Shown in pieces: positions 29,924 through 62,891 of a DNA stretch of 64,000 nt. A program made the position numbers and the translations under genes. Every line of letters starts with the position of its first letter. The first letter of the stretch is position 1. The notes beneath the pieces were generated by a model that was not told the DNA's origin, made no database searches, and saw only the letters and a list, made by a program, of their open reading frames with translations. Location of the stretch: the NCBI RefSeq assembly GCF_018977255.1, contig NW_024704807.1, positions 124,001 to 188,000 on the forward strand, given 5' to 3'. The DNA comes from Callorhinchus milii (Eukaryota).

Positions 29924-30382
29924 ATGAAGCAGATTTTCAGCGCAACGTATATTATTTTGAATTTAACAATAAAGCTTTGCTGTAAGTAGTGCATGAATTT
30001 GGATCAACAAATTCTTTTTTACCTGCTAAATAATTACAGTTTATCGCGCCAGACACTATCTTAATTCCTTTGCGAGTATGTTCATTTATATTATCTTTCC
30101 AGGTGTATTGGCTGAAAGTGACGTTTCACAGTCACCTCAGGTCGTGACAGGGAATGAAAATGGAAACGTATCTATGGAGTGCAACACCACTGTGTCCGGC
30201 CCAACCTTTCATTGGTACACACAGTATGGAAACGGTTCCATCCGGTTCTTGGTTTTGGGAACAAAAGACATCAATGTGAAGGACAGGATAAGCGCTTTGG
30301 CTAATACAAGACAGAGAAACTGCACTCTAACAATCCAAGACCTGCGAGTGTCAGACACCGCCACTTACTTCTGTGCGGAAGG
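29924..30382 (+). CDS. TRAV: TCR alpha/delta V segment, family A, intact
   Basis: Leader 29924-29981; V exon 30103-30382 ending YFCAEG; RSS CACAGTG 30383-30389, 23 bp, ACAAAAACA 30413-30421. Confidence 0.93.
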
Positions 30383-37044: not shown

Positions 37045-37240
37045 CTCCAATTGCAAACGTGCTGTAGCTACAATCTACCAGCAGATGGCGGACTAAAGAA
37101 ACACATGCAACATGAGCTGCAACTTACATGACTTGTCACGCTCCATTCGGTAACTAGTTTCCTTTGCAGCAGTAACAGGTGCTTCCTGTTGTGCTTGACA
37201 TAGTTCACTCATATACACTATTGCTGCTTCAAATGTAATT
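37045..37240 (+). promoter_or_regulatory. Conserved intergenic module 1 with CTCF-like core
   Basis: CCAGCAGATGGCGG at 37078-37091. Confidence 0.55.
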
Positions 37241-38387
37241 TACAAATGTTGTCTAAAGTATTAACACAAGGCTTAGGTTTCTCAGGAAATAATTTCTATC
37301 TCACATATTTTATATTGTGCCCTTTTCACAAATAGCAGCCGCTGTTAAGTTGTATTCTCCACTGTATTGCAATTCTCTCTTGAAAGTTGTTATATTATCG
37401 GCTTCTGCCACCCTTTCAGGCAATGCATTATAGATCAGAACCACTCGCTGTGTGAAAAAAATGCTTCTCCTCTCCTCAATGCTTATTCAGGCTACTACAC
37501 TAAACGTGAATATTAAGCTATTTAATACGTTTATTACCATATAATTAAAATATACTTTGATATTTCATCCCGCAACTGAAACATTGAAAAGCCACCGAAG
37601 TGCTCACTGTGTAATACATATTGGATTATGTTCTGATGTTCTGGGCTGACACTCTAGGGCAGGCCTGGCTGTCTGTATTGTCGGTGAAGCTTGTCCTACC
37701 GAGGAGATACTAAACCGAGGTCCAGACATCTTGCCTGATGGGACTATAATGATGCCATAGCACTGCTCGAGAAAGGACAAGGTTTCTACCGATGTCTGGA
37801 CAGATTTTCTATCGGTAAAATTCGTCTTTCATTCATAACTGTTTGTGGAACATTGTTGTACACAAATTGGAGGCCACGTTGACAAACAATCTGCCTCTGT
37901 ATTCGACATTAAAACCTGCGAGGAGGTTTGAGGCGAATCTACGAAATGACAAGACTGTGATCGATGAAAGCGTTTCTCAAACACGAATAATCAACACAAT
38001 TGTAAGGTCATGTATTATTCAATATTGTAACAATATCGATAATAATAACAAAGGTTGCATTTGCTATACTGCCATATTAAGTCATTGAGACGTCTCAAAG
38101 ATCGTCACAGAATATACCGAAAAGTGGAGTACTATATTCTTTTATGCCAATTGTGTACAGCTGTGTACCACAAAAAGTTGTGGGTTGAGTTGCCTTATTT
38201 TATGGCACTGTGTGTGTGGCAGTGTGTGGGGGGTGAGGTAGAGCGGGGGATTGGGTAGTCATGGGCGTTAGATTGTATTGTGTGGGACAAACGTGGTAGC
38301 TAACTGTGTAAAAGATCGGCCCACAAAAATTTGTGGATTGAGTGACCTGATTTTGTGGCACTGTGTGTGTTTGTGTGGGGGAGGGGA

Positions 38388-38610
38388 GGGGGCGGGGCGC
38401 TGTGTGGGCGGGGCGTTGTAATGCAACGGCAGTGATTGGGCGATGCGGCTCAGTGCGGGCGGAGCAGAGTCTGAGTGACGTATTTCTGTGGGCGTGGCAG
38501 TGGCTGTGTGGGCGTGGCTCTGTGAGGGCGGGACAGTGACTGAGTGACGTAGCTCTGTGGGCGTGACAGTGGCTGTGTGGGCGGGGCTCTGTGTGGGCGG
38601 GGCTGTGACT
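38388..38610 (+). repeat. GC-box/CRE-like minisatellite at a family E promoter (shorter copy)
   Basis: Same units as 26860-27260, with fewer copies. Confidence 0.8.
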
Positions 38611-38684
38611 GTGTGGCTACTGAGCCCAAAAGCCCCATCAATCCACATTGGGGAGTTAATGTCAGACACGGGATCAGGATGCTC

Positions 38685-39533: not shown

Positions 39534-41053
39534 CATTGCATAAAACTGACTTTATATCTGTTTAAATACAGAGAAAACCGGTCAAGCCTTTGGAGACGCA
39601 TGAAAAAGTATTGTTTATTCTTTTATAATGCAAGCTGCACTTAAAACATGATCATTCTAATAAATTAGAGTGGAACATGTCGAAAGTCCTGTAGTCATTG
39701 GTTGCAGGTTAGAGTATTTACCTCGCAAGCAAGAGGACCTGGGTTCGATTCTCGGATGGGATTAAACAGTGGCCTAAATTCTTTGCTCCACATGCACGCC
39801 TCTGTATACCTAGCAGTAATATGAACACGATTTGTAAGTCGACTGGTGGATGGCTTTTCAAGCAGCATCAATCCATTGAAAATAAAATATGTTCTCTCAA
39901 TCTGTAACTGTTTGTGGGCAATATATTATCACTTTTCACCCCCAAAATTTCACAATCACAACACTGTACTGTATATTCTGCAAAGCAAATAAGACGTCTC
40001 AACGGCATTGTTAATAAATGGCATGGTACCAAGTGAAAACATTTATGGGTTCACAGTAACAAATATATTTCGCTGTCTGAACACTGGGTGACACTGGTTC
40101 GCTGGTATTTTGACCAGACACCACTGGCTTGAAAGCGTGCGAAAAATGGTCCAATAAAGCATGTTTCTGTTCCCCACTTCTAATCATTTTCAGAGTGTTA
40201 CCAGCCGCATACCTTTGCTTGGTTTACACTTTCCATTCTGAACAACAGATACACTCGAAACGTAGAGTATTGGAAACAAAGTTTATTACAAAATTGTAGG
40301 CGATCACAGTCGACACAATGATAGGGAGTATCAGGATTCTCTCACTGTTCTGCTCCCACGTTCACTGGAAAATTATTACTTATATCCTATACTATCCTAA
40401 ACCTGTTTGTACGGAACCCAGAGAAACTCTTTATCTCATTCCCTTCATCACAAAGTTCTTCACACACTATTCCTGCAAGTCTACCAATTATCAAGATACG
40501 GGGTCTCCGCCGAACTACATGTTGGTCCTATAGTTTAATGGTTAGAACTATCTCCTCGCAAGCAGGAAAACGAATGGCGCATCGGTATCCGGGGTAATAG
40601 TAACTTACAAAATGTTGTGAATTGTTCACCCAATCATCGACTGTTTGTGTGCTTCTGCAATGCAAACGTGGCTACCACGCATCGTTCTATAAATAGAGCC
40701 AATTAATTTCACTGCATTTTCCGCGAAGCATCTCGAGACGTATCCAAGACACTTTAAGGCGGTGCATCAAATACAAGGATTATTATTATTATTTGTATCT
40801 TTCCTTGAGTCTTTGTAACTAGGTCTCTCTACACTGTCTCTTTCACAAATTACTCTGGTTTGCCACAGTGAGGGAAAGGGAATCTGAACTTAAACGATAG
40901 GAGGTGTCGCAATACTCCTCCAGAGACAAGACAACGTCGCGGCGCTAAGAGACAACTCGTCAAGTGAAGAAGCGTTCAAAAGCGAGGAGCTGCATTTGGA
41001 TTATTCCCTCTGGCATTTCGATCAAAGATTTTGATGTGAATCGAGAGTTGAGA

Positions 41054-41508
41054 ATGAAGCAGATATTCAGCACAACGTATATTATTTTGAATTTAATAAT
41101 ATCTCTACTGTGTAAGTAGGTTATGAGTTCGGGCAAACTCACTCTTGTTTTCCAGTTAAATAATTGGCAATTGTCCTGGCAAATATTCTACGAATTTCTT
41201 TTCAACAACTTATATTTCTATTTCTCAGGTGTCTTTGCTGAAAGTGCTGTCTCACAGAGACCTCAGACTGTGACAGAGAATGAAAATGGGAATTTATCTG
41301 TCGAGTGCACCAACACTGAATCCACCACTGCCTTTCATTGGTACAAACAGTTTGGAAACGGCTCCATCCGGCTCTTCGTTTTGGGAACAAAAGACATCAA
41401 TGTGAAGGACAGGATAAGAGCTTTGGCGAATACAAGACAGAGAAACTGCACTCTAACAATCCAAAACCTGCGAGTGACAGACACCGCCACTTACTTCTGT
41501 GCAGCGAG
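41054..41508 (+). CDS. TRAV: TCR alpha/delta V segment, family A, intact
   Basis: Leader 41054-41111; V exon 41229-41508; RSS CACAGTG 41509-41515, 23 bp, ACAAAAACG 41539-41547. Confidence 0.93.
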
Positions 41509-42189
41509 CACAGTGCTGTGTGTCTATGAGGGACCTGTACAAAAACGTGCTGCGTTTACTGCAGCTCAATGGTTAGAGCACTCGCCTCGCAAGAGAGATA
41601 AATGGGTTCGTTTCCCGGCAGCAAAGGCAAACACGGCTGTTAGTCGATTGGCAGAACACTTTTCGTAGGGTAATAATTCCTTAAAAAAATGAAAAAGTGA
41701 CAAAAGTTTACTCAATCGATCAACCGACTATTAGCGAAATTTACGGCTGCGTTTCATCCAAAGTCAGTACACTTTTCTTAATCACAGACGAATTTTTAAC
41801 CAGCTGTAAGTAGGAAACTGGTTAATAATCGACTGGTTCCTTCAAACTAAATAAAGATAATGTGGGCACTCTTTGAGCAACTGTTTTTGAAATGCAACTG
41901 TGCGCAATTGACTGCCAAGTTTCGTCAACAAAAAACACAGTGATTAAATTTTTAAGTGTACATTTAAAGCTCTTTGAGGCGTCAAGAGGATGATAGCAAC
42001 AGCAAAGCTTATCGTTATATTTCAGTTTGTTTGAATACGTAATATCATGGTGATGTGTTGCCTCTTGTGTCAGACACACATGTTACAAACATCAGTTTAA
42101 AATATAAAGCATCATTCAGCGAAATAAACCGTAAAACACTATAACTTGTAGCTATGAAATAGATAAGTCAACTTGTGTTTTGCACCCAA

Positions 42190-43845: not shown

Positions 43846-44294
43846 GCCATATGGATTCCTGCAGTTCATTAATTATTGCAATCGCCTCGCAAGAGAGTGC
43901 ACCTGGTTTTGCTTCCTGGCAGTAAAAGTAGGAACCCTGCTGTTAGTCGATAAGTGGATCCCGTTCCGGTTTAATAAATCCTTAAGATAATATTAATAAT
44001 ATAGTGGTCACTTAATCCAATGGGACACTGTTGTGTGCAAGTGGCTGCTTCGCACACAATATGCAGATAATTCGATTACAGTACATTATCTGAAGCGCGT
44101 CTCGAAGATGCGATTTGGCACTATATCAAATGCGAGGATTATTATGAAATATGATCAGATTATTGGCACAGAAATAACTTCATGTGTCTTACTTTCTGGG
44201 CGGACCTGCCTATGCACTTGTTAGCCTCTGTTTTTTTTAATCAGTGGGACAACATAAATAACAACTAATTGTATTATTTAACAATTTGCTGTCA

Positions 44295-44500
44295 AATGTC
44301 TCCAATTGTACACTTGCTTTTGCCACAATCCATCAGCAGATAGCGCACTATACACACATATAACATGAGTTGTACTTACAAAACGTGACAGTTTCCTATC
44401 TGGAACTAACCTCCTTGGCAACAATAACAGGTGCTTCCTGTTACAGTTGGTGTTGGTTCCCTGACACAGACTATTGCTGCTTCAGCTTAAATGTACAAAT
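44295..44500 (+). promoter_or_regulatory. Conserved intergenic module 1 with CTCF-like core
   Basis: TCAGCAGATAGCGC at 44333-44346. Confidence 0.5.
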
Positions 44501-45059
44501 GTTGCCCTAAAGCATTAACACAAGGTTTAGTTTGCTCAAGAATCAATTTCTGTTTCAGCTTTTCAATGTTATTGTCGCTCTCTCAAACAAGCAGCCGCTC
44601 TTAAGTGGATATCACTGCGGTAATCAACCGGCGAGACTTTGTTAAGGACAATATTGTTTTTTGTCTTGGTTAGTTTGGGTAGAAAATTTAAACTGACATT
44701 GTTTAATTTAATTTAGGAATTGAGTAACTATCATAGGTATACATTCATTGGCTTTTGTCTCAATTTTATACCGGAATTTGCAGCAATAATAATACTCCAT
44801 ATCTCTAATATAGTGCATTTCATGTTTGAGGTGGGAGAAACGAGGATGCTGTCAGCTGCTGTAAAATAAATCATACAATAGGCAATTTGCGCATATTAAT
44901 TTCCCAACATGTGTTCATAAAATGAGAGATGGCAAATTGTCGACTTGGATCCTGAACCGAAAATGTTCTGACAGATAAGAGACTGTTCAAGTAACTGAGA
45001 GAGTTTGTCACCTCAGACTTGATGATGGAATGCAATCATTTATTCATACAGGCTTGGCT

Positions 45060-45410
45060 GCACTATTCCATGATTCTACATCTAACTTCTTGCGTTGATC
45101 ATGTCGAGGCAAGATTACACCAACTGTCTGCTCACTCTATAACCTGCCCCGTCCATTCGCAAATTGCAGACTATCCAAACATCTGTATGTTCTGTTATTT
45201 TCACACACGATTACGCAAATTTTTTATCTGAACCTATCCCAACCTACTGGCTCCCAATCAATCGACTCAGATCGAATTCAAGATCATCACCATCACCTTT
45301 GAGTTCCTATATGGTTATTCCCAATCCTGCCTCTGTGATATTGTGGAAACCAACAAATCTGGTCTTCATTTCAGTGCCAAGTCGGTCACCAAATCGAATT
45401 GGCTCGTAGG
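45060..45410 (+). mobile_element. L2-type LINE ORF2 C-terminal fragment
   Basis: Degenerate translation ..YWLPI.. / QIEFKIITITFEFLYGYSQSCLCDIV resembles the L2 HWLP-RIDFKI-LHG motif. Confidence 0.55.
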
Positions 45411-45603
45411 AAATTCGCTCGCCCCTCCCCCCAGAAAATAAACTGTGAAACTTTAACTTCCCTCCAACGTTGAGCAGAGAATGCTCATGTCACTTGATTC
45501 GGAAGTGAGGTGATAGAAAACAAGTATCACCTGAAAAAAAGCCGTACACCTCCAATCAACACAAATATCTTATCCACACAAGAGCTCAGCGGTGGAGTGA
45601 ATA

Positions 45604-46641
45604 ATGGGGATGGAGAGAACTGTTGTGTTTCTGGCTCTTGGTGCCTTCTTATTAGGTAAATCTTTCCATCAAATTTTAAAATCATTTAACTGAGTCTGTT
45701 TCACTTTCCTTCTCATATTAGTAATCACAATTATATTATATTTATATTTGTAATGGCGTTTTATGTAGCGTTTCAACATGTTTTCGAGAAGTCTAACGGC
45801 GTTTCGCAGAATATACTGTAAAGTGCAGTGACTGTGTATTTCTTGGGGGAGAATCGGTAGCCAATTCCACAAAGTAGTGCTCCCCAAATAACCAAAAGTG
45901 TTTTGCTCTATTTTTCAAAGGATAGTCATCCCTGTAAAGCGATCGGTTGATTGAATAACAAAGAGTTTTCTATTTCGTGTTGTGTAACTAGAGGTGTGCG
46001 CGTTAGGGAAAGTTCCCTATAATTGTGCACTATCCTGTCCAGGAATCGAACCCTTGCCGTTTCTCTTGCGAGGCGAGCGCTCTAACCACTGAGCTACAGT
46101 ACTCCACGTCCTTTTATTTTCTTTTTGAACGGAATATTATTCCCGGATAGGGATCAGCTAATTGTGTAACCAACAGATTTCTACTTAGCGTTGGGTAACA
46201 AGAGGAGTGTGCGTTAAGGAAACTTGCTTAAGATTGTGCCCTGTCCTCTCCGAAAATCGAACCCGGGTCGTATCTCTTACGAGGCGACCGCTCTAACCAC
46301 TGAGCTACAGGAATCCACGCTCTTGTCTTTCAGGCCTGACCCAGGGAGACTCTGTGACACAGAAGGTGGCTTCGTTGATTAGGAAAGAAGGAGGAAGTGT
46401 GACCATGGAATGCCATTATGATACGTCTCTGAGCAGCTACTATTTAAGCTGGTATCGAGAACAACAAGAAACACAACCACAGTATGTGCTCCAAAAGCAT
46501 TCCAGTGGTAGTACATATAAAGCAGACTTTGCTAACAAGTGGTTCGCTGTTGAGCTCTAAACCTCGACAAAATTCACCAGTTTAACCATCTCCCTGTTGG
46601 AGCTGTCTGACAGCACTGTATATTACTGTGCTCTCCAAACA
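45604..46641 (+). pseudogene. TRAV: TCR V segment, family F, single in-frame stop
   Basis: Leader 45604-45655; V exon 46334-46641 with TAA at 46558-46560, then the frame continues to YYCALQT; RSS CACAGTG 46642-46648, 23 bp, ACAAAAACT 46672-46680. Confidence 0.88.
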
Positions 46642-47450
46642 CACAGTGACGGGAACCAGTCAGAGACTCGTACAAAAACTAACAGCGTTTAGTGGGTTTG
46701 TGCTCTCGTCTCTCTCGGCCGCAGCAGCGATTTCCTGTGGGAAGGGAAACGAGAAAAAAACACAAAGAGAACATCACATTCACAGCTCATCCGACTTTCA
46801 CGCAAACAACTTAATGATCCCATGATCCCAACTGATCATGCAGTAACCGTAGTTAGAGCACAGGCTTCGAAAGCGAGAGACCTGGTTTGGATTCCCGTTA
46901 GGGCGAAATATTTGCAAGTTTCCTTATTGTACATATCTATGTTTAGCTTGCAGTATGTTGGAACCTGATTGGCTGATTGCTTTTCCGACGATAGCAATTA
47001 CTTCAAAATAATAACTATAATAATACATAATTTGGTCACTTAATCCACAAATCTTTATGATCCACTTTTTGTGTGCAACTGGCTGCCGAGCTTCTCGCAC
47101 AGAACATACAGCCACTACACAGTATTGTGTATTCTATGAGGAATTTTGAGGCGTTTGCATAGTTTTATAAGTTGCTATAACAAACGGAAGATTAAACATT
47201 ATATTTTTATTATGATCGTCCTTCTCGTTAATGCTATGCCTTGCACGACTACAAGAATCTGAGTGAGAGGAATGTTTGTCACCAGTGACTGGTGAAAATC
47301 GCTGTACAAAAGCAATTGGTTGTTGTATTGAGACGCAGCTGAGATGCCAATGAGGTGACGTGAGACTTTGGCTCCGCCAATGCCGACAATCACTGCGGGT
47401 TATCAGCAAACTGATGGCACAGACACAGCCACACAGACTGAGGAGCAGCA

Positions 47451-48410
47451 ATGAGGCTGTTTGCTGTCTGTCTGGTGCTGGGAACCCTTAGGTCAGGTTA
47501 ATTTAATACAGTATTGATGCTGAATGTCATCTCCAATTCAACAACACTTGTTGGAGGGAGGGAGACCTGTAGCTCAGTGGTTCGTGTCCTCGACTCGATA
47601 GCGATAGGAAGTGTATTCGATTCCCGGACAAGACATGGCTGAAGCACGGGCATGTTTTCTAACACCACTCACACGCCTCTGCTTACCAAGAGGTAAGTAG
47701 GACAATGTTTGAACAAATGGGGTAATAATAACCTCCAAATAATAATAGTTTATCAAGCATTTTTAGTGGATAATATTCAGGGTTTAATCGTCGCTGAAAA
47801 ATCTCTAAATTATATTTTGATAACTCTTTCCACGATTAAAATTGGTACACCGTTGTACGCAATTTGGTGCTTCATTTCACCAATAAATATATGCAGCAAT
47901 TCAACTTTACAATATATTATGATTAGCTCTTTCAGCAGAATCAAGTCTGCTATACCAAAATACTTTGCTTATTATTATTTCATTTTTAACAAATTGCGTA
48001 TGTATAGCATTTCTCTCATAAGGATATCCTCCCAAGGGAATATCAATTGAGAAAAATAGGAAATAATATATCGTCGTGTTCTTGCATGTTTATTACAGAT
48101 CTGTGTGTCGGTGACTCTCTCAGTCAGAAATCTGCCACTATGGTTCAGAAAGAAAGAGAAACTGTGACGTTGCAATGTACTTATTCTACGACTCAAAGTG
48201 CTTACGGTCTCCTCTGGTACAGGGATGACCAAGACAAACAACCTGAATTTATAGTTCGGAGAGATACTTGGAATGACAGTCATGTCACGGGAACAGGATT
48301 TGGAAACCGTTTCTATGCTAAACTGCACAAATCCATTTCTACCACCAGCTTATCCATCACTGATTTGTTGGTGGATATAGCGCTATGTACTGCTGTGCCT
48401 TTAGCCTCAC
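47451..48410 (+). pseudogene. TRAV: TCR V segment, family G, FR3 frameshift
   Basis: Leader 47451-47496 (donor GTTAAT); V exon 48099-48410 has a -1 shift before the DSA motif; RSS CACAGTG 48411-48417, 23 bp, degenerate ACAACAAAA. Confidence 0.82.
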
Positions 48411-49129
48411 CACAGTGACAGACTGCACTTCAAGTATCGTACAACAAAATGCTTTCAATTTTAAACTTAGCGATGAACTGTCTGTTGAAGTGTGTGCGGA
48501 ACCTTGGTCAGGCCTTGAGGCCCTTCGAGGAGATGACATGTCTGTAGCCAGAATCAGGGGAGACCACATTCACCTGACACCAAATTGTTAGCTGATCGTT
48601 CAAAACATTACCTGTCGCGATAAACGTAGACAGCAATTAATGAATCAGTTAGTCATCACAGTTCCAGTTGCAGTTGATTTGTTTCCGTTTGCAAATATAA
48701 TAAACAGAAATGTTTGTTTGACAATACATCAAAGTTTTGGTCATATTTAGCACATATTTTTGAACAATTGGCCAATTATTCATTGAATGATTTGTGGACA
48801 ATGTTGTGCTCAATTGGCTGTTACATTTCGCCAACATCATAAACAGTCAATTCGCTATTCGGTGTATTTTGTGATTTGGCTTGAGACGTCTCAAAGACGT
48901 GATGAGGCGCTATATCCAATGCAAACAGTAATATTATTTTTACTCAGTGTGTGGGAGACGTGGCATCACCTTCTTTGTCGTTACAATGGCTGTGAGCGGC
49001 CTGAGTTATTGTAATCTGAGACTCAGTTGATATACGCAACTGGAAACAACAACAGATTTCTATTTCATTCACTGTTTTCATTCAGGTTTTGCATCAAATA
49101 TGAAGCAATGCTGAAATGTGGCATATTCG

Positions 49130-49143
49130 CCATTAGATGGCGA
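49130..49143 (+). promoter_or_regulatory. CTCF-like site
   Basis: CCATTAGATGGCGA; the paralog at 53748-53761 reads ACATTAGATGGCGA. Confidence 0.4.
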
Positions 49144-50331
49144 CAATGTAATATTAATTTCCAACTAACCAAGACGTTAAAAATATATGCCAACTAAATT
49201 ACCGACTTGAAAATTGCATTGTTAATAAGCATGCAGGCGCAAATTCATTTATATTTGAATTTGAGGGAACTTGGAAGAAAAAAGAATATCCGTGCTTTGG
49301 ATTATTATCCCGAGTCTAATAATTCATTCAAAAGAAGAATAATCGCAATTTGATAACTTAATCCACGGCTGTTTGTGAACTTACTGTGGGAAATTGGATG
49401 ACGCATTTCACCCACAAAAGAGAATCAATTCGCATTATATTCTGTGAAGCGCTTGGAGGTGACTCGAAGGCGTGATGATACGCTTTACCGCTCTATCACT
49501 AATGCAAGTATTACTACTACTATTAGACTGAGATCCGGTCTGCTTGTTCAGGAGGACAGCAAAAATTGCATGGCACTGTTGGAAAAGATATTTCCAGTAA
49601 CTCTTTCCTTTTCCATACAGACACGGCTGGAAAGGCTTTCAGGAGCAACAGTTCGTCCAGAATTTTTGGTGTATGATCAAATAAAGTTCAGAACGCACCA
49701 TTAATGTAATCAGCGAAGAGTGAGAATACTTTACAAGGAACCACTGATAATAAATTAAAATGTTGATACTTTTAATATAGCCGTTTCAGTCTGTCTCTCT
49801 GTTATTTTGTGGGAGACAATAAATGAACAAAACAATCACTGTGCTTATGAATATCCAAAGCAAAACTGCCATTTCCATGTTTTCCACGTACACATGCAAA
49901 TCTCAAAGACAAATTATTGGAATTGAATGTAAACTCTCTCTCTGCTTACTTAATTCTGAAGAGTATTCGGCAAGACCCAAAACGTGGGGCCTTCCGAGTG
50001 TGCGTTGGGGAATCTGCTGTAATCTAAGTTGCTCAAAGAACAAAGCTTGTTATTGGTTTCGTTTTGACAAGCTTTCCCACTGTTTGTCAGGCTATCACCA
50101 TCCTTCGAGTTCGCACTTTGGCTTGCAGGTTTAACAGTAGGTGAGTGAGAGTATTCCCTGCCCCAGTGACTGGTGAAAGCCGCGGTATAAAAGCAATTGT
50201 TTGTTGTATTGAAACGCGGCTGAGATGCCAATGAGGTGACGTGAGACTGTGGCTCCGCCAATGCCGACAATCACTGCGGGTTATCAGCAAACTGATGGCA
50301 TAGACACAACCACACAGACAGAAGAGCAGCA

Positions 50332-51263
50332 ATGAGGTTGTTTGCTGTCTGTCTTGTGCTGGGAACCTTAATGTCAGGTGAGGCCCTATTGAGCTAATTC
50401 ACTGTTGGTGATGATGCTAAGCTCCATTTAAACGACAAATGTGGAGTGAAACCTATATCTCAGTAGTTGGAGCTTCCGCCTCGCGAGAGGAGCTGGGATC
50501 GATTCCCCAGCAGGGAGAAATCTAAGGCAAATTTCGTTACTCCACAGAAACGCCTCTCTATACCTTGGACGAAGCAGGAACCCGGATACTTTATAAAACT
50601 GAGCAATACACCTTCCAAATATCAATTTCTCCATTCATTGGTTTTGAGTCGTTAGGCCGATCACTTTTTCGCGGGCAATAACCATTACTTGTCTGTAAAT
50701 AATAATTTGCTAACTCTTTCCACAACTGTTCTTGCGAAACTGCTGTGCGCAATTTCCCTCACAAAAATACACAGAAATTAAATGGATAGAACATTCTGTA
50801 TAGTGCACACTGACGTCTCAACACCGTGATAATGTGCTCTATAAATTATACAGATTATTGTGTAATTATAAACAAATGTCAAATGTATAACTCGTTTATT
50901 TTCAAACCTAAATTAAGTAACATATTGTTGTGCTCTTCCTTGTTTAATACAGAATTCTGCGATGGGGACTCTGTCACTCAGAAAGCTGCGACGATGGTTA
51001 AGAAAGAAAGAGAAACGGTGATTTTACAATGTACCTATTTAACGACTGAAAGTGATTACCTTCTCCATTGGTACCGGCATTACGCAGGCAAACAGCCAGA
51101 GTTTATAATATGGAGATATTCTGGGAGTGAACTTGAAGAAAAAGGAGTTGGATTTGGAAACCGTTTCTCTGCTCAGCTTCACAAATCCAATTCTTCCACC
51201 AGTTTATCCATCTCTGAGCTGGTGGTGTCTGATAGCGCTGTCTATTACTGTGCGCTCCAAGTG
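50332..51263 (+). CDS. TRAV: TCR V segment, chimeric family H body with family F 3' end and RSS, intact
   Basis: Leader 50332-50377; V exon 50953-51263 ending YYCALQV; RSS CACAGTG 51264-51270, 23 bp, ACAAAAACT 51294-51302. Confidence 0.92.
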
Positions 51264-52044
51264 CACAGTGATGGGAACCAGTCAGAGACTCGAACAAAAA
51301 CTAACAAAGTTTAGTGGGGTTTCCGCTCCTATCTCTCTCGACCGCAGCAGCGATTTCCTGTGGGAAAGGAGACGAGATAAAGACACAAGAAGAACATCAC
51401 ATTGACAGAACATCTGACAGTCACACAAACAACACAATCATTCCACGATGTCAAAAACTCTTGCCATAACCGTGGTTGAGGTCCATAGCTGCTTCCAATT
51501 CCCGACAGGGCGAAATGTTGGGCAAATTTGCTTCATACACAAACCTCTGCTCAGCAGTAGGTAGTAACCTGATTGGCGGATTGCTTTACCACCGCTAAAA
51601 CACCCTAAAAAAAGGATAATAAATAAATTGATCACTCAATGTACGACTCTTTATGGGACACTGATGTGCGTAATTGGCTGCCGCTTTTCGCTCGCAAAAC
51701 ACACAGTAACTACAATTTATTTTTTATTCCGTGAAGCGCTTTGAAACGCCTGGATGATTTGATAAAATGCGATAGCCAAAGGAAGAATTATTATTATATT
51801 ATTATTATGATCATCCTACCAGTTAATGCTACGGCTTCCACGATTACCACGAGCTGATTGGGAGGGAACCCTATCACCAGTGACTGGTAAAGCCGCTGTA
51901 TAAAAGCAATTGGCTCCTGTATTGAAACGCGGCTAAGATGCCAATGATGTGACGTGAGACTGTGGCTCCGCCAATGCCGACAATCACTGCGGGTTATCAG
52001 CAAACTGATACCACAGACACAACCACACAGACTGAAGAGCAGCA

Positions 52045-53034
52045 ATGAGGCTGTTTGCTGTCTGTCTGGTGCTGGAAACCTTTATATCAGGTGAGGCCGT
52101 GTTGAGCTAATTCAGTGTTGCTGCCGATTGTCAGCTCCATTTCAACAACAATTGGTAGCGGAGAACGAAAGCAGAGTGATTTGAGCGCTCGCCTCGCTAA
52201 TCGAGAAGACCTGAGTTAATTCCCTAATAGGATATGCCGAAACGTTAGTCAAGTTTCCTTACTTCCCTCACACATCTCTCGTTGCCAAGCGATAAGAAGG
52301 ACACTGTTTGCTTCATCACCAGCCTGAACCTAAGGGTTAAGATTACAATCGAAATAATAATAGATTCTCCAACATTTTAGTGGATTGGCGGATTTCTTTA
52401 ATAATCCCTTAAAAAAAATTAAATAATAATTTGATAACTCATTCCACAAGTAACTGTGCGGAATCGCTGTGCGCCATTGGATGCGGCATTTCGTCGATAA
52501 AAATACACCGCCATTCATTTTACAATATATCATGTGTAGCGCTTTCAGCAGAATCAAGTATGCGATAGTCTGCTATAGCAAAATACTTTGATTATTATTA
52601 GTTCATTATTAACAAATGGCAAATGTGTAGCGCCTCTCTCATAAGGATAGCCTCCGAAGGGAATAATAATTGAGACAAATAATAAATAATATATTGTCGA
52701 GCACTTCCATTTTTATTCCAGATCTGTGTGTCGGAGACTCTCTGTGTCAGAAAGCTGCCACTGTGGTTCAGAAAGAAAGAGAAACTGTGACGTTGCAATG
52801 TACTTATTCTACGACTCAAAGTGCTCACGGTCTCTTCTGGTACAGGAATGACCAAGACAAACAACCTGAATTTATAATTCGGAGAGATACTAGGAATGAC
52901 AGTCATGTCAGTGCAACAGGATTTGGAAAGAGTTTCTATGCCAAACTGCACAAATCCATTTCTACCACCAGTTTATCCATCTCTGCGCTGGTGTTGTCTG
53001 ACAGCGCTGTGTATTACTGTGCCTTTAATCTGAC
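52045..53034 (+). CDS. TRAV: TCR alpha/delta V segment, family G, intact
   Basis: Leader 52045-52090; V exon 52722-53034 ending YYCAFNLT; RSS CACAGTG 53035-53041, 23 bp, ACAAAAAAA 53065-53073. Confidence 0.92.
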
Positions 53035-54952
53035 CACAGTGGTAGGCTTCACTGCAAGTCTCGTACAAAAAAATGCCTTCAATTTTAAACACAGCAAACT
53101 TTGTCTGTTGAAGTGTGTGCGGAACCTTGGTCAGGCCTTGAGGCCTTTCGAGGAGATGACATGTCTGTAGCCAGAATCAGAGGAAACCACATTCACTTCA
53201 CATCAACTTGTTAGCTGAACTTTCAAATCATTACCTGTCACGATAAACGTAGACAGCAATTAATGAATCAGTTAGTCATTACACATCAAGTTGCTGTTGA
53301 TTTGTTGCCGATTGCAAATATAATAAACACAAGTGTTTGTTTAAAAATACATCCACGTTTGGTCGTATTTAGCACATAATTTTAAACAATTGGTCAATTG
53401 TTCGTTGAATGATTTGGGAACACTGCTGTGCTCAATTGGCTGTTACATTTCGCCAACTACGTAAACCGTCAATTCGATATTCAGTAAATTTTGTCATTTG
53501 CCTTGACACGTCACGAAGACGTGATGAGGCGCTATATCAAATACAAAAATAATATTATTATTGCTCAGTGTGTGGGAGGCGTGGCATCACCTTCTGTGTC
53601 GTTACAATGGCTGTGAGCGGCGCCTATTATTGTAATCTGAGCCTCAGCTGATATATGTCAGATACGACAATAGATTTTTATTTCATTCAATGATTTCATT
53701 CAGGTTTTGCATCAAATATGAAGCAATGCCGAAATGTGGCATATTGGACATTAGATGGCGACAATCTACTATTGCTTTCCAACTAACCAGCACGTTAAAA
53801 GTGCATGCCAACTAAACTAACGATTTTATAAACTGCATAGTTAATTAGCATGAAGGTGCAAATTCATTTATATTTGAATTTGAGAGAACTTGGAAGAAAG
53901 AAGAATATCTGTGCTATGGATCATTATCCCGGGTCTAATAATTCATTCAAAAGAAGAAGAATAGCAATTTGATAACTTAATCCACGGCTGTTTGTGAACT
54001 TACTGTGGGAAATTGGATGACGCATTTCACCCACAAAAGAGAATCAATTCGCATTATATTCTGTGAAGCGCTTGGAGGTGTCTCGAAGGCGTGATGATAC
54101 GCTTTACCGCTCTATCACTAATGCAAGTATTACTACTACTATTAGACTGAGATCCGGTCTGCTTGTTCAGGAGGAAAGCAAAAATTGCATGGCACTGTTG
54201 GAAAAGATATTTCCAGTAACTCTTTCCTTTTCCATACAGACACGGCTGGAAAGGCTTTCAGGAGCAACAGTTCGTCCAGAATTTTTGGTGTATGATCAAA
54301 TAAAGTTCAGAACGCACCATTAATGTAATCAGCGAAGAGTGAGAATACTTTACAAGGAACCACTGACAATAAATTAAAATGTTGATACTTTTAATATAGC
54401 CGTTTCAGTCTGTCTCTCTGTTATTTTGTGGGAGACAGTAAATGAACAAAACAATCACTGTGCTTATGAATATCCAAAGCAAAACTGCCATTTCCATGTT
54501 TTCCACGTACACATGGAAATCTCAAAGACAAATTATTGGAATTGAATGTAAACTCTCTCTCTGCTTACTTAATTCTGAAGAGTATTAGGCAAGACCCAAA
54601 ACGTGGGGCCTTCAGAGTGTGCGTTGGGGAATCTGCTGTCATCTAAGTTGCTCAATGAACAAAGCGTGTTATTGATTTCGCTTTTGAAAAGCTTTCCCAC
54701 TGTTTGTCAGGCTATCACCATCCTTCCAGTTCGCACTTTGGCTTGCAGGTTTAACAGTAGGTGAGTGAGAGTATTCCCTGCCCCCAGTGACTGGTGAAAG
54801 CCGCGGTATAAAAGCAATTGGTTTTTGTATTGAAACGCGGCTGAGATGCCAATGAGGTGACGTGAGACTGTGGCTCCGCCAATGCCGACAATCACTGCGG
54901 GTTATCAGCAAACTGATGGCACAGACACAACCACACAGACTGAAGAGCAGCA

Positions 54953-55885
54953 ATGAGGCTGTTTGCTGTCTGTCTTGTGCTGGGAACCTTAATGTCAGGT
55001 GAGGCCGTATTGAGCTAATTCAGTGTTGGTGATGATGCTAAGCTCCATATAAACGACAAATGTGGAGTGAAACCTATATCTCAGTAGTTGGAGCTTCCGC
55101 CTCGCGAGAGGAGCTGGGATCGATTCCCCAGCAGGGAGAAATCTAAGGCAAATTTCGTTACTCCACAGAAACGCCTCTCTTTTCCTTGGAGGAAGCAGGA
55201 AACCGGATACTTTATAAAACTGAGCAATACACCTTCCAAGTATCAATTTCTCCATTCATCGATTTTGAGTCGTTAGGCCGATCACTTTCTCGCGGGCAAT
55301 AACCATTACTTGTCTGTAAATAATAATTTGCTAACTCGTTCCACAACTGTTCTAGTGAAACTGCTGTGCGCAATTTCGCTCAAAAAATACACAGAAATTA
55401 ACTGGATAGAACATTCTGTATAGCGCACACCGACGTCTCAACACCGTGATAATGTGCTCTATAAAATATACAGGTTATGATGTAATTATAAACAATCGTC
55501 AAATATATAACTCGTTTCCTTTCACGCCTAGATTAAATAGTACATTGTTGTGCTCTTCCTTGTTTATTACAGAATTCTGCGATGGGGACTCTGTCACTCA
55601 GAAACCTGCGACGGTGGTTAAGAAAGAAAGAGAAACGGTGATTTTACAATGCACCTATTCCACGACTGAAAGTGATTACCTTCTCCATTGGTACCGGCAT
55701 TACGCAGGCAAACAGCCAGAGTTTATAATATGGAGATATTCTGGCAGTGAACTTGAAGAAAAAGGAGTTGGATTTGGAAACCGTTTCTCTGCTCAGCTTC
55801 ACAAATCCAATTCTTCCACCAGTTTATCCATCTCTGAGCTGGTGGTGTCTGACAGCGCTGTGTATTACTGTGCCCTTAGTCTCAG
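54953..55885 (+). CDS. TRAV: TCR alpha/delta V segment, family H, intact
   Basis: Leader 54953-54998; V exon 55573-55885 ending YYCALSLS; RSS CACAGTG 55886-55892, 23 bp, ACAAAAACT 55916-55924. Confidence 0.93.
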
Positions 55886-57192
55886 CACAGTGATAGAGTG
55901 CACTGCAAGTCTCGTACAAAAACTGCCTTCACTTTGTGCATAGGGATGATCTGACTGTTGAAGTGTGTGCGGAAACTTGGTCAGGCCTTGCGGCCCTGCG
56001 GGGAGCAAACATGTCTGTAGTTTGACAAAGAGGAAACCACATTCAACTCCCATAAACTTGTCAGCTAAACGTTTACCTCATTATCTGTCACAATAAATGC
56101 AGACAGCAATTAATGAACAGTTACAGTTGCAGCTGCTATTGATTTACTTCGGTTGGCAGGTAAAATAAACACGAATACTGATTCTAATGCTTTATGAAAC
56201 GGAGCCCTATAACGAAGTGGGAACAGCATTCACCTCACAAACGAGAGGTCCCGAGTTCCATCCCGGGCCGGGTGAAAGCTTAGACAATTTTTCTCAATCC
56301 ATACACATTTCTCTATTTATCTTGCATTGAGTAAGAACCCGATTGCAAACCGATCGCTGGATTGCTTTTCCGGGTTTGTAGTATTCCCTTCAAAACATAA
56401 TGTGGGTCACTCAATCCATTTCTGTTCAGGTGGATGTTAAATATCCCAAGGAACGACTCGAAAGAATTAGCGATATCCTTGCAGATGGAAGTGAGTGTCC
56501 GGGTTGGTAGTTTTTGTGGAGGTCGGTGTGGTTGGGCGGCGGAACTATGGTAACAATGAAAGGTGGAATAGGATCTATGACATCTATTAAAATGTTTGTG
56601 TCCCCTTGGCTCATTCAATGCCCGTCTGAAGACCATCTTTCTCAACCGAGTCTTCAATGATCATCATTCCTCTACCCACCATGCTCTCACCCCTCTCCCA
56701 TCCCGCGTGCAAAACCATTCACTTTCCAGCGATTTGCGACGTCCTCCCTATGTGAAAAACGCTACCTATGGCAATTTATTGCTGTAATTGGTGTCTCAAC
56801 GATGCATTATCAAATGCAAGTCTGTGATATTTTCTCAACAAAGTTTTACCCACAACAGCTTTGACATAATTTTGGGGTCAGTTTGAAATGAATGTACAGG
56901 TAAATGAGTGTAGCGCAACACTTTTTCACGTGCAAGGATTATTATGATTCTCTGTCTCCAAACTTTTATCCACAAGAAATTTAACATCATCTTATGGTGG
57001 CTCTGATATCATTGAACATGAAAATGGGTGTAGCCCAACGCACATATTTAGCAGCTGGACAAGGTGACAGGGTAAATTTGTCAAGGAAACGCTGCTGTGG
57101 GGTCACGGATGTGATGGTGAAACCCGTCATCCTCGACAAACACTTTCTGTCATCAAACTCTGATGGTAAAGGCTTCTTAAAGAAGAGCGACA

Positions 57193-57890
57193 ATGTGGTT
57201 GCTCACCGAATGCCTTCTCCTGTTGAGCTTTATGTCAGGTGAGCCTGTGAAATCTACAGGACACGTTAACATTGATTTAGAGATTTTATTTATCTGAAGG
57301 ACGGCTCATTGTGTTTGGCAGTCCGGGCTGATCCCCCGAGCTGGGCTTGGGAGTTGAAATGTAGGAATGCAAAGTTAATGACAGTAAATCTTGTATTTGA
57401 TAAAACGCCTTAAACTAAACGAGATGTCTGTTGAGCGAAAAGCGTTTGGCAACTGCACAAGGAAACTAGTTTAAGATTCCGCCCTGTCCAGTAAGGGAAA
57501 AGATCCCAAATCCTTGCGCGGCGAGTTCACTAAGCACTGAGCTACAGGACTTGATGTTTATCTTATACCTCTCGTTGCAGATGTGGTACTGGGAGATTCA
57601 GTCAGACAGCAGACAGCGGGGCTGAGCAAACAAGAGGGAGACACAGTGAGTCTGAGCTGCTCATATACCACCAGCTCGTCCTATGCTGCTCTGAACTGGT
57701 TCAGACATCAACCAGGTCTCGCTCCCCAATACGTTCTCTACAGGGATACTGCTGGAGGAAGCAACACTGCAGATTTCGCCGCACGTCGTTTTTCTTCACA
57801 GCTTGACGAGAATCAGAGACAAACCACTTTAATAATACGCAGCGTCGTTATCACTGACGCTGCCGCATATTATTGCGGCTTAACATCAAG
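57193..57890 (+). CDS. TRAV: TCR alpha/delta V segment, family I, intact
   Basis: Leader 57193-57238; V exon 57581-57890 ending AYYCGLTSS; consensus RSS CACAGTG 57891-57897, 23 bp, ACAAAAACC 57921-57929. Confidence 0.94.
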
Positions 57891-59389
57891 CACAGTGCTG
57901 CAAAGCAATGACTTCCCTGTACAAAAACCGAGCCAACGTGGAGCCTTTTAGCTCTGTGGTTAGAGCACTTGCCTCGAAAGGGAGAGACTTGTGTTTGATT
58001 CCCACTCGGGGAAAATTGTGGGCAGGTTTCATCACTCCACCCACCTCGGTTTGCTGAGCAGTAAGAAATAACGTGTGGTTAGTCGATTGACAGTTTGTTT
58101 TTCTGGGGATAATAAACCCTTAAATTAATAATAATAAATTGGTCACTCAATCCATGACACGTTTTTGAACTTCGCCGAACTCAATTGGCTGCCACGTACC
58201 ATCCACAAAAGATATAGTGAATTCACTTTACATCATATTCTGTGATTTGTTTTGGGATGTCTGAAAGTCGTCATCAGGCGCTATATCAAATGCAAGGATT
58301 ATTATTGGCAATATTATTCCATAATGTGTTTCTGTCAGACTACCTCACTGTACATAAACTGCTGAAAATGAGACAGAGAATTTCATATGAGTACAGATAT
58401 TAGTTTTGACAGTTGACCTATTTAACAAACTTCGACATTGCTGCAGTATCTCTCACAGGAATCACGTGACTGATTTCCAAACAAAAGTGAAAAGAAAACA
58501 GTTGTTCATGTAAGTAAAGAGTGAAATAAATGAAAATAATCCTTATATTTTCTGTAGAACTTTTCTCGTCTTCGAGACGTCACAAAGTGCTTCACAAAAT
58601 ATGCTGTAAATTTTACTTACCGTGCATTTTGTGAGCTAAACATGGCAGCCGATTCCTTACAACAGTGTCACGCAAATAATAAAGGATTAATGTGACAAAA
58701 TTATTATTGAAATACCAACTGCAACGATTATTATTAGAACAACAACGTTTGAGAAAAAAAATTACAAAATCATCATTGCAGGTAATTGAGTCACTCACAA
58801 TTATCAAATGTAATTTTATGATCTATTTATTAAGCGTAGAAATAAAAGTAAAGCTTTGGTAACTGTAATTTTTTCGCTGAAAAGACATTACTTGCTAACG
58901 TCTATTATAGAGACAAACAATTAAATTTTCTCAACTGATCAACGAAGCGTAGCGCTTCTAACTTTAGAATGATAAAATAATAAAAATGATAATGATGCAA
59001 TTTTTATTTGCTTGATGGTTCCAGAAATGAAAATGAAGATAGAATCCTGTGGAATTAACCCCTATTAACGCTAGCAAGAAATGTGATTCTATCGTTGAAA
59101 GTTATGTGCACATGTTTAAATAACTTGGTATTCACTTTCGTTAACTTATTTCTACTTGATGATTAGATTTAGATACACTTTGCTCATCGTATCATAGAGT
59201 GAAACTGAGGAAAGTGTGTCGACATTCAGAGGTAAATTACAAAATATATTAGTAGTATTGTCTCACATCGATTAATATGAGGCAATAGCTAATACCATAC
59301 GTATGTACATACACACTAACGAGCCCCATGTTGCGACCCAGCATTGGATTGGATTAAATAGTTTATTAAATGAAAGACACCATTGTCAG

Positions 59390-59655
59390 TCATGAATTCA
59401 GTATCTCTGCCCCACCCTCTGGAAATCTATCCCGCAAACACTCCACCTCACCACATCTCCTGACTCTTTCAAGTCCCAGGTAAGAAATGTCCCTTCGAAC
59501 ATCCTTCATCCATACTCCCATCCAAACTCTCTTTCCCTTCACCCATCCTGACCCCAACTTCCAGGTCGTATCTAAAAAACCCTGACTCTCCAGCGTCCTG
59601 GGACGAATTTCCGTCGTGCAGGTATCTATAGAAATGTAATTTGTTGTTGTTAATG
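59390..59655 (+). mobile_element. L2-type LINE 3' end
   Basis: CCCTCTGGAAATCT...TTCAAGTCCCAGG..., ending TATAGAAATGTAATTTGTTGTTGTT, the L2-type tail. Confidence 0.55.
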
Positions 59656-61266
59656 TTGTTATTGATTCCCTTCACAACCATTTCTGCAATCTCGCTTATC
59701 ATAAATTGGCTGTCAAGCTCCCCTATGTATGCACAATCACTTCACTTCGCAGTAAGACAAAGTCACATGTATAATGTGCCTTTCTTTTCAACAACAACCG
59801 CAACAAATTGCATTTCCCTTACGCCATTCATGTTGGACTGCGACTCGGAATGTTGAATTTTAGGATAACGTCCGAAGACGACAGAGAGGTCTTACTTGAA
59901 TCCGAACTTGAGTTGAATTGAGGTGGGAGCTGTGGGGGTGGTCGTCCGTGGAGGAAAGCTGTCTTAAATGGTTGGGTTAAAGAGGATAGAGTTGAGGTGG
60001 AATGCCTTTACTTTCGTGGAATATTAATATTAATGATGTATGACTTGTCCTGCGTCCAATGGACACCCGGGTAATTCTAAAACAAAGTGCACGTTTCAAA
60101 AATAAACTGATACCAACACAAAACATACACTGTCATAAGATTGCAATGCCATTAGTTGTCACCATATAGCAATGCAATAAAACTGACTGTTATACAGTAG
60201 CTTTCTTATCAGCAGGACACCGCATTATTGCTTAGATGTGCAAATAATGTGGAGTCCTTTAGGTTAGTAGTTAGAGCAACAGTGTCCCAAGCGAGAGGGC
60301 ATGGGTTCGATTCCCGAGTGGGGAAAAATCTTTTGCAATTTTCCTTGCTTCAAAGGTGTCTTTGTTTCACTAACAGTAAGTAGGAACCCACACGATTGTC
60401 TATTGGAGGATATCTAAATACTTTTTTTATTTAAAATATAAAAGAAATTCATTGTGATTGTTTTAAAACATTAAATAAATCGTAAGTAAAATACTAATTC
60501 GGTAATTCAATCTGCGACACTTTGTGCGATACTCATGTATCCATTTGGCTGATCAATTTTTCCAACAAAATATAAAATAGTTCGACTCTACCGCATATCT
60601 CTGAATCGCTTTGGAACGTGAAAAGAATCCATAGAATACGCATCATATTCGCTGCCTTCTCATCCTCCTCCATGTCCCCCCGCAGCCCTTCATCTCTTTG
60701 TCACCGCCTCTATCCCCACGAAATATATAACACCCCAACCCATACTCCTTGACCATTATTATTCCCTCCTCCTTCTTACCCATCATCACCCATATCTCAC
60801 TATCTCACTGCTGCATTGACCGGCTTCCCCGTCCTGCTGTTGGTCATTGCAACAGAACTCACTACAAGTCAACTGTGTGTAAGTAGTTTCTTCATGTGTC
60901 TTTCCCAATTCTCAGTGAAGTCCCTCTCTACATCACACAGCCTTTGTCCCTCTCACAGTGTCAGTTTAAAGTCCCTCTCGTTGGCTTCCCCGTCAATTGT
61001 CCATTTAAACCTCAATGAGACTCGAGCAGTCATTCCCAAATCCCCTTCTCTCCCCAATGCTCTCAGGCACAGTTAGTCAGTCCCTTTCCTCATGTATCTT
61101 CTTCCACTCCACCCCCACACGTCCCCCGCCCACCACTCAAAGCCGCTGTCACCAGCTATGATGTGACGCTGTTCATCTCAAATGAACCAAGACTCCAACG
61201 CTCTTACAGAACAGCCCTGTGTTACTCACAGTCACTCTGAGGTGTCCGGGGCTGACGGTATCTCCC

Positions 61267-61986
61267 ATGGTTGAGAGAATGTCTCTCCTGTATGTCTGCA
61301 TGTGCCTCCTCTTCTTACAATGTAAGTGTGTGTTTCCATTACACAGCAATGTTGAAAGTCATCATTACAATGTGCGATATAATAATAATCCTTGCGTTGA
61401 TATAGCGCCTTATCACTTCGATGAGACGTTTCAATGCGCTTGCGGGAATACACTGTGAAGTGAGATGACAGTTTTATTTGTGGGGAAATTCAGCAGCGAA
61501 TTGGTATCATTAATATTATGACAACTATGTTATACGTTAAAATTATTCGTCTCAATTAACACAATAATGGTATTGTATGTCGTGATAATATTATATTAAT
61601 TGGTGTCAATCAAAATCAAGCCAAGGCTCGGGATAAAATTTCCGTAGCAGTTGACCTTGCTGAAGACTTCTTAAACTAATGTTATGTTGTGTATAATTTT
61701 CAGATGCTTTCAGTGCCTCAGTAAAGCAGACGCCATCCGCTATTAGGAGACAAGAATGCGAGTCTTTGACCATCAACTGTGTCTTCGAAGCAGAGTCTTA
61801 TGAAACTTTCAGTAAGATGCAATTTTATAGAAAATTTCAGAACGAAAGAGACTGGAAGCGGATCCCTCTTGAAGCACGCTTTGTTGTAAAGACAGACAAG
61901 GAATCGATGTCGTCTTCACTGGAAATTAATGCTTTGCAAGTTCAAGACAGCGCTGACTATAAATGTACAGCTCGGTACTGGGATAC
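61267..61986 (+). CDS. NTCRV: VNAR-like variable segment of a NAR-TCR cassette
   Basis: Leader 61267 (or 61279)-61321; V exon 61704-61986: ASVKQTPSAIRRQECESLTINCVFEAESYETFSKMQFYRKFQNERDWKRIPLEARFVVKTDKESMSSSLEINALQVQDSADYKCTARYWDT. It has the ESLTINCV and YKC motifs, only 61 aa between the canonical Cys residues, and no CDR2. Confidence 0.9.
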
Positions 61987-62024
61987 CACAGTGCTGTATC
62001 TGGCCTTCTTTTAATACAAGAAGC
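61987..62024 (+). other. RSS of the NAR-type V, 22-bp spacer
   Basis: CACAGTG 61987-61993, 22 nt, ACAAGAAGC 62016-62024. Confidence 0.8.
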
Positions 62025-62349
62025 CCCGTCACTAACTCAAAGGATAAACAGAGAGTCTGTGAACTTCCAATAAATTCAAAGCACATTCATCATTTGTGTT
62101 TGATGCACAATGATGTTTAATAACACTTCTTTTAGGAAACAACAATTACTTATGGATACGTCGGAAAAGAATGTCGGTATGTATGCACATTGGAAATCTT
62201 CTAGGATTCACATAACTAATTAATTATTCCACGAGACACGCGGCATATCAATGTCCAACTATCACAATATTTAAAAGATTGTTAAATGTTGTATCATTGA
62301 TTGACCATTTGTGAACGGCTGACACATTTCAACAGTATTTCAAACCATT

Positions 62350-62421
62350 GGTTTTTGGATTTACAATAAACACTGTGTTGGGATTGGGACGATCACATTG
62401 GCAACCATCAGCACAAATACT
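62350..62421 (+). other. NTCRD: NAR-TCR D segment with 12/12 RSSs (coding 62378-62393)
   Basis: GGTTTTTGG 62350-62358, 12 bp, CACTGTG 62371-62377, then TTGGGATTGGGACGAT, then CACATTG 62394-62400, 12 bp, ACAAATACT 62413-62421. Confidence 0.88.
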
Positions 62422-62737
62422 GCGCAACTATTTTCTTGGAAACACATGAGACTTGATCACTGACAACCGTATACTATTTAATGTTCCTGAATGTGTCGAC
62501 ACTTTGCTTTCAAAATTACTTATTTCAAACGGACATTTCTGGATTTATTTGTAGAGAGGTGTTCTTTGTGCCGTACACTTTGTCTCTGTTTGGGAGGAAA
62601 TAATATTGAAAATAAACATGTTTTATACAAAAGAATAGTACGAAGATGGAACCACTGGTGAATCGGTAAGGATTAATGGCCAATTTGTCAGTGTTTGTTT
62701 GCGTTAGTGACAGTGTTAAACAGTGATCTGACAGAAC

Positions 62738-62823
62738 AGTTTTTGCGCCTCAGAGAATGAGTGTTGTGTGACTGTGGTTCTTTAACGAAGACGGATCAGG
62801 AACCAAAGTAATTGTAACAAAAA
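62738..62823 (+). other. NTCRJ: NAR-TCR J segment with 23-bp RSS (coding 62777-62823)
   Basis: AGTTTTTGC 62738-62746, 23 bp, GACTGTG 62770-62776; translates FFNEDGSGTKVIVTK; phase-1 donor GTGAGT at 62824. Confidence 0.88.
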
Positions 62824-62891
62824 GTGAGTGAATCAATAATCGATCGAAATTAATTGAAATTAATAGAAACAAAAAGCAACTGGCGAAGAAA

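Follow-up and report, generated by a model that had tools for sequence, protein, structure and literature searches.

The question raised by this locus was how a V segment could come to combine the body of one V family with the coding end, recombination signal (RSS), and 3′ flank of another. The window, that is, the whole stretch of 64,000 nucleotides analyzed here (elephant shark, Callorhinchus milii; NCBI RefSeq assembly GCF_018977255.1, contig NW_024704807.1, positions 124,001 to 188,000 of the forward strand), carried on its plus strand a run of V segments, every one with a consensus heptamer, a 23-bp spacer, and an A-rich nonamer, and all of them translated to a V-set domain. Several public gene models were exact translations of pieces of the window, and the protein relatives found in a large protein collection were all from C. 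milii except for a V-J-C sequence, P0024. This protein used the G/H family described below and was not derived from the hybrid segment; it is evidence that the G/H family is expressed, and its constant region has a transmembrane segment with a weak resemblance, at weak E-values, to that of TCR delta. There was neither a constant region nor a J-alpha within the window. The top solved relatives of a NAR-type V exon at 61721–61984 were all shark VNARs. A V array with 23-RSSs and an adjoining NAR-type V is the expectation for a cartilaginous-fish TCR alpha/delta locus, and the window was taken as a putative stretch of the elephant shark TCR alpha/delta V array.

An RSS-like site at 61987 followed the NAR-type V exon. 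Next came a short D-like stretch, preceded by a 12-RSS-like site with the nonamer GGTTTTTGG and with its heptamer, CACTGTG, ending at 62377; a J-like exon at approximately 62777–62823 (..DGSGTKVIVTK, then GTGAGT) lay just ahead of an N gap at 62892. Positions 61721–62830 look like a NAR-TcR V-(D)-J cluster, and NAR-TcR in the elephant shark is reportedly taken up in a published paper (PMC1845163). At the other end of the window, a large inverted duplication of approximately 94% identity paired 1–4883 with 43748–38788 and reached an N gap at 4884–4913; through it, a minus-strand V gene (RSS at 2179) mirrored the V gene at 41509. Older duplications of multi-V blocks (homology units) with 70–87% identity occupied 10600–43400, for example 13468–15177 / 28823–30540 / 40048–41595 and 24448–27122 / 35754–38611, and RSS spacers were family-specific throughout them. 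Three tRNA-Ala-like elements lay on the minus strand (2062–2133, 11367–11436, and 16669–16739); the tRNA-like elements of the window are probably the heads of tRNA-derived SINEs.

The hybrid segment, termed HF here, lay on the plus strand with its leader exon at 50332–50377, which encoded the hydrophobic peptide MRLFAVCLVLGTLMS followed by G, with the donor CAG/GTGAGG. The leader intron was 575 bp long and in phase 1, with the acceptor ..aatacag/A at 50953 and the split codon GAA. The V exon (50953–51263) encoded an intact V-set domain (C23, W41, and YYC; Pfam V-set E = 3.8e-16) in which LQC, WYR, and YYC were all present, with an H-type body and the F-type coding end CALQV; its top solved relatives included TCR delta and alpha V domains and also antibody V domains. 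The 23-RSS (51264–51302) consisted of the heptamer CACAGTG at 51264–51270, the 23-bp F-family spacer ATGGGAACCAGTCAGAGACTCGA, 21 of whose 23 bases were as in F, and the nonamer ACAAAAACT at 51294–51302. The exon start, heptamer, spacer length, and nonamer were all as the initial annotation had described them. Since HF has a leader, GT/AG splice sites, an open V-set domain, and a consensus 23-RSS, it looks usable as a germline V segment, and it presumably takes part in V(D)J recombination. Upstream of its leader, positions 50226–50300 contained two CCAAT motifs and TGACGTGA (CRE-like). This block was common to the leaders of G, HF, G′, and H, and its counterparts at approximately 47330–47430, 51925–52025, and 54845–54925 were 90–98% conserved even between old copies; it is probably the V promoter.

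HF was flanked by four further V segments, all on the plus strand. The leader exon of F (45610–45655; MERTVVFLALGAFLL plus 1 nt, donor G/GTAAAT) was found by tblastn with an F-family leader and by reading of the sequence, and its leader intron contained a tRNA-Thr-like element on the minus strand (46242–46315, ARAGORN), probably a SINE head. Translation of the F V exon (46334–46641) identified it as a pseudogene with a single in-frame TAA in FR3 in place of the family CAA (Q); the F-family paralogues read IELQTSTKF at this site. Its 23-RSS (46642–46680) comprised CACAGTG, the spacer ACGGGAACCAGTCAGAGACTCGT, and the nonamer ACAAAAACT. G was also a pseudogene: its leader exon (47451–47496; MRLFAVCLVLGTLRS) had a donor with a 10-bp deletion relative to G′, its V exon (48099–48410) had a 1-nt deletion in FR3 that put YYC out of frame, and its 23-RSS (48411–48449) had an H-type spacer and the degraded nonamer ACAACAAAA. 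G′ had an intact open reading frame in its V exon (52722–53034), with a leader exon at 52045–52090 (MRLFAVCLVLETFIS) and a 23-RSS at 53035–53073 carrying an H-type spacer and the nonamer ACAAAAAAA. The leader exon of H (54953–54998) encoded the same peptide as that of HF, and its V exon (55573–55885) was intact with the coding end CALSL(S). The 23-RSS of H (55886–55924) had the spacer ATAGAGTGCACTGCAAGTCTCGT and was followed by a G/H-type 3′ flank that was common to G and G′ and absent from HF.

At the protein level, HF differed from H at three residues (A/P and M/V in FR1; L/S in CDR1), reading KAATM and TYLTT where H reads KPATV and TYSTT. The initial annotation had credited HF with a different CDR3 start and RSS. 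This held for the germline coding end (CALQV in HF versus CALSL plus 2 nt in H), the RSS spacer, and the 3′ flank, but not for the heptamer CACAGTG and the nonamer ACAAAAACT, which were the same in H, HF, and F.

To locate the change from H-type to F-type sequence, HF was compared with H and F by the three-way alignment that had been proposed as a check. As claimed, the exon was nearly identical to H up to SDSAVYYCA, with 293 of 301 positions identical up to TGTGC (97.3%), compared with 58% identity to F, and it then switched to an F-family coding end, spacer, and flank. Over approximately 210 aligned bases after the switch, HF was 81% identical to F (85–88% in the first 200 bp, against 46604–46810) and 47% identical to H, the level of unrelated sequence, so that its flank was not equally similar to H. 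At sites differing between F and H, HF had the H base at all but one of approximately 120 before the switch, the last being 51237, and after it the F base at 104 of approximately 117, the first being 51257, with the H base at approximately 13. One breakpoint accounted for 224 of the 238 informative sites, and this analysis placed a single switch in the interval 51238–51256 (ctgtCtattactgtgcGct), in the V-Y-Y-C-A codons and inside an FR3 stretch in which F and H are 83% identical over 60 bp. The F-like part of HF was not a short chance match, as it opened a 4.7-kb collinear alignment with the sequence downstream of F.

Self-BLAST gave this alignment as one HSP of 4785 columns pairing 46575–51302 with 51197–55924 at 86.4% identity, with a period of approximately 4622 bp (4.62 kb). 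In the first 3 kb of the unit, BLAST with strict penalties dropped plainly homologous blocks, and global alignment was used there instead. From self-BLAST and the identity profile, copy 1 was placed at 46604–51256 (the F tail and flank, G, a spacer, and the H-type leader, intron, and body now in HF) and copy 2 at 51257–55875 (the F-type tail and flank in HF, G′, a spacer, and the leader, intron, and body of H). The homology had its left edge at approximately 46597/51219 in FR3 of F and its right edge at approximately 51255/55875 in FR3 of H. Upstream of F, nothing matched the sequence upstream of HF or H beyond FR3 (60–64 bp, 83%) and a weaker FR1 block, and the sequences downstream of H and of HF had nothing in common. 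The layout was therefore a left flank (the F body), two units in tandem, and a right flank (the H tail), with the sole new junction inside HF; on either side of the hybrid lay a collinear copy of the intervening segment, with the two parents retained beyond them. This arrangement agreed with the initial annotation's proposal that F-G-H became F-G-(H/F)-G′-H, and it supports an origin of that order by unequal exchange between F and H.

In such a scheme, the array would originally have read F - G - H, where F is a member of one V family and G and H are older paralogues in another. Pairing between the 3′ ends of H and F would have led to an exchange, whether through homology or microhomology, and whether as a crossing-over or as a template switch during replication. 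With the 4.62-kb stretch that begins with the F tail and closes with the H body now present twice, the order would have become F - G - (H body/F tail) - G′ - H. HF would thereby have inherited its promoter, leader, intron, and V domain from the H type, and its final two codons, the spacer of its RSS, and its 3′ flank from the F type. The initial annotation had added that the event saved the 3′ end of F, a gene now dead. This was a figure of speech, as F retains its own 3′ end and its sole coding defect is the one TAA.

A mis-join, or a falsely duplicated haplotype, could produce a chimera of this kind during assembly, and the region is repetitive, with parts of the copies 99% identical over 600 bp. 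The tail of HF, however, differed from that of F by approximately 15%, so reads from F cannot have been its source; the two copies were 13.6% apart overall, and there was no gap (N) in 44000–62800. The public gene models gave a further line of evidence. UniProt A0A4W3IXC2 was an exact translation of G (48101–48370) and then of 51219–51311, LVVSDSAVYYCALQVHSDGNQSETRTKTNKV, which is the hybrid junction; in a piecewise search, its N-terminus came from a third piece. A0A4W3IEH6 was exact for 133 residues, joining HF (50883–51126) to H (55768 onward), and then shifted frame, requiring one extra A in the nonamer A-run relative to the window. The junction and the order G-HF-H thus recurred in models whose underlying assembly version has an indel relative to the window. 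Because the exact junction peptide occurs in a model of another assembly version, a mis-join, which the initial annotation had named among the findings that would overturn its reading, is unlikely. Taken together, we consider an assembly artefact highly improbable. As proteins, these two models and A0A4W3H0G0, in which a gene of F type and one of G/H type from another part of the genome are fused, are annotation artefacts, mis-spliced across neighbouring V segments with RSS read-through. The A-run in the H nonamer (55916–55924) has five A in the window and six implied by A0A4W3IEH6, a mismatch that is either a homopolymer sequencing error or a polymorphism.

To determine which of the two tails had moved, we read tails from the public elephant shark gene models, many of which run through the RSS. 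Eight H/G-family models had ..(S/T)V(I/M)(D/E)..(S/R)L(V/L)QKLPSLCT-like tails (TVIDCTASLVQKLPSLCT-type), as in G, G′, and H, and five F-family models had CAL(Q/E)PHS(D/E)GNQSE(T/S)RTKT.(S/T)V-like tails (CAL(Q/E)PHSDGNQSETRTKT.SV-type), as in F; two further models, P0016 and P0023, ran on into the F-type flank WVCA.VSLGRSSD. Within the window, the RSS spacer tracked the V family across all groups of related segments (A, B, C, and G/H), with HF as the sole exception. Because tails are family-specific genome-wide, HF is read as an H-family gene with an acquired F-family tail and not the reverse, and F as the chimeric gene was rejected on the same ground. Outside the window, P0001 (A0A4W3IBB4) was a third close H-type gene with an H-type tail and 91% amino acid identity to HF. 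It had KAATM and the intron-end reading NILLCSSLFNT in common with HF and not with H, so H has derived states at these positions.

The donor of the tail need not have been the neighbouring F. A normal H-type gene could have received tail and flank, by conversion or exchange, from a non-neighbour F-family gene in a larger array of F-G/H blocks, and other parts of the genome also contain F-type genes with a G/H-type leader after them (P0010 and P0016). At the translated level, moreover, the tail and flank of F were nearer to those of the F-family paralogue P0023 than to those of HF, which also counts against a direct exchange between F and H. Against a distant donor, the entire 4.6-kb unit, starting at the tail, was collinear in its homology with the neighbouring copy; G and G′ were each other's nearest relatives among all models found; and KTN followed by TAG after the final V occurred, among F-type tails, only in F and HF. 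The sister relation of the F and HF tails follows mainly from the collinearity and these two shared states, and with this evidence a non-neighbour donor appears very unlikely.

For the exchange between F and H itself, the homology available today amounts to approximately 60 bp at 83% across FR3, together with the same heptamer and nonamer. Classical NAHR usually needs longer homology than this, and the short substrate stands against the unequal exchange proposed here; minimal-homology crossing-over or a microhomology-mediated template switch would be possible with so short a pairing substrate. The consensus RSSs on both partners also suggested a germline RAG-mediated joining of H to F sequence, comparable to the germline-joined Ig genes of sharks, and cartilaginous fish are known to have germline RAG activity. 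In HF, however, the switch fell within the coding sequence, 8–26 bp before the heptamer; the RSS was intact, with no P/N-like additions; and both RSSs had 23-bp spacers, against the 12/23 rule. With the breakpoint not at the heptamer, a RAG-mediated origin was rejected, its probability being close to nil.

The two halves of HF were not equally diverged from their parents, with 2.4% in the exon versus approximately 15% in the tail. Between the two copies, K2P was 0.17 in the F-type tail, 0.14 in the G promoter and leader, 0.12 in the G exon, and 0.135 in the 0.9-kb spacer after G, and it reached 0.39–0.44 in two repeat-derived patches. These patches (46811–47250 and 47501–47900 against 51434–51850 and 52100–52510) were 30–33% diverged, with 12–17% in their surroundings, possibly through faster decay of a CpG-rich repeat or through independent rearrangement. 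At 49345 divergence dropped sharply, and K2P was 0.008–0.064 in 49351–51237; as raw differences, there were 5 in the 610 bp of 49351–49960, 6% in the leader intron, and 2.4% in the V exon. With the neutral parts of the copies 13–17% apart, the duplication is old, and a recent duplication of 2–3% was rejected because divergence is 12–17% in the tail, in G versus G′, and in the spacer. A single duplication predicts even divergence along the unit, whereas the observed values ran from 0.8% to more than 30%; this weighs against an unequal exchange as the only event, and extra events (conversion, and faster decay of repeats) must be assumed with it.

The low-divergence tract (49345–51256, partner 53964–55875) was itself a mosaic, with successive values of 0.8%, 7.8%, 2.0%, 5.6%, an island of 16.7%, and then the V exon at 2.4%. 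The island (50846–50947) lay directly upstream of the HF V exon in a gap-free alignment, differed from the rest of the tract (Fisher p = 9e-9), and matched the baseline of the unit (13%). An unconverted island at the old divergence level means that the introns of HF and H were already homologous at that level. The simplest reading of the near-identity of HF and H is that, after the duplication, the final 1.9 kb of the unit was made alike again in patches: gene conversion or unequal exchange would have acted in several tracts that together took in most of this part, including the V exon, and since such tracts end where homology ends, that is, at the hybrid junction, the F-type tail would have survived.

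The drop at 49345 also suggested a different order of events, in which an older duplication of an F-G block left a full second F whose upstream region and body were then overwritten by those of H, through gap repair or conversion anchored on the left in the spacer downstream of G and on the right in FR3. This would account for the jump in identity at 49345 and for the younger age of 49345–51256. A single recent replacement, however, predicts neither a tract as uneven as this one (0.8–7.8%) nor the gap-free island within it; no trace of F-type upstream sequence was left near HF; and approximately 1.9 kb of non-homologous DNA would have had to be swapped on a 60-bp anchor. We regard such an overwriting of a second F as unlikely. 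An old unequal exchange in F-G-H that gave HF, followed by patchy re-homogenisation, is probably the origin of this gene; its mechanism, the conversion events, and their direction we infer from the patterns of identity described above. A misalignment of F and H at the D-S-A-V-Y-Y-C codons, as initially suggested, fits the present switch, but because of the later overwriting of the V exon, the strict limits on the original crossover are no tighter than 50948–51256. The present FR3 switch is its likeliest site, because FR3 is the best block of homology between F and H.

As the heptamer and nonamer are alike in H and HF, the effect of the RSS change on recombination of HF is likely modest. It could also be supposed that HF, with its RSS spacer, coding end, and flank swapped, came to differ in how, when, and with which partners (delta versus alpha) it recombines, and that repeated conversion by H kept the V domain intact because HF is used. 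We give little credence to this proposal; if it were true, V families could change the repertoire by exchanging RSS modules, here in a jawed vertebrate of an early-branching lineage.

Hybrid (Lepore-type) genes formed by unequal crossing-over in tandem families are represented by the KIR hybrid genes (PMC2816608), which, like HF, have the 5′ part of one paralogue and the 3′ part of another with a single switch, and are found where two tandem copies meet, with the junction falling in a stretch that the parents share. HF differs from them in that its parents belong to different V families (58% identity) with approximately 60 bp of FR3 and the RSS motifs to pair, and in that the swapped part is mostly non-coding (the RSS spacer and flank) with two codons. 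Duplication of homology units, or blocks, of TRAV/TRDV genes has been described for the cattle TRA/TRD locus (PMC4289303), where, as in the window, multi-gene blocks of mixed V subgroups were copied in tandem and pseudogenes were carried along (F and G in the window). Unlike the cattle blocks, the block edge in the window cuts through two V genes and so yields a new gene; the words hybrid, chimeric, and unequal do not occur in the text of that report (PMC4289303). Interlocus gene conversion between duplicated V blocks was reported for the proximal and distal copies of human IGK (bioRxiv 10.1101/006866), with sharp-edged tracts of raised identity inside older duplicates, as in HF and H, whereas the tracts in HF and H are short (0.1–0.6 kb) and patchy, and they stop where the hybrid junction ends the homology. 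A literature search found neither a published annotation of elephant shark TRA/TRD V genes nor an account of the HF hybrid. Block duplication, unequal-exchange hybrids, and interlocus conversion are all established, and the elephant shark case combines them.

The general significance of HF is modest, because the mechanism is a textbook one. It is a resolved case, in an early-branching jawed vertebrate, in which the birth and death of a V array would have made a new segment in one step, with an intact V domain now joined to the recombination signal and flank of another family. In HF and H, patchy conversion (concerted evolution) appears to overlie an old duplication, so that near-identity of V exons can mislead on the age of a duplication. 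In studies of the elephant shark repertoire, HF should be counted as a separate germline V segment with a CALQV end.
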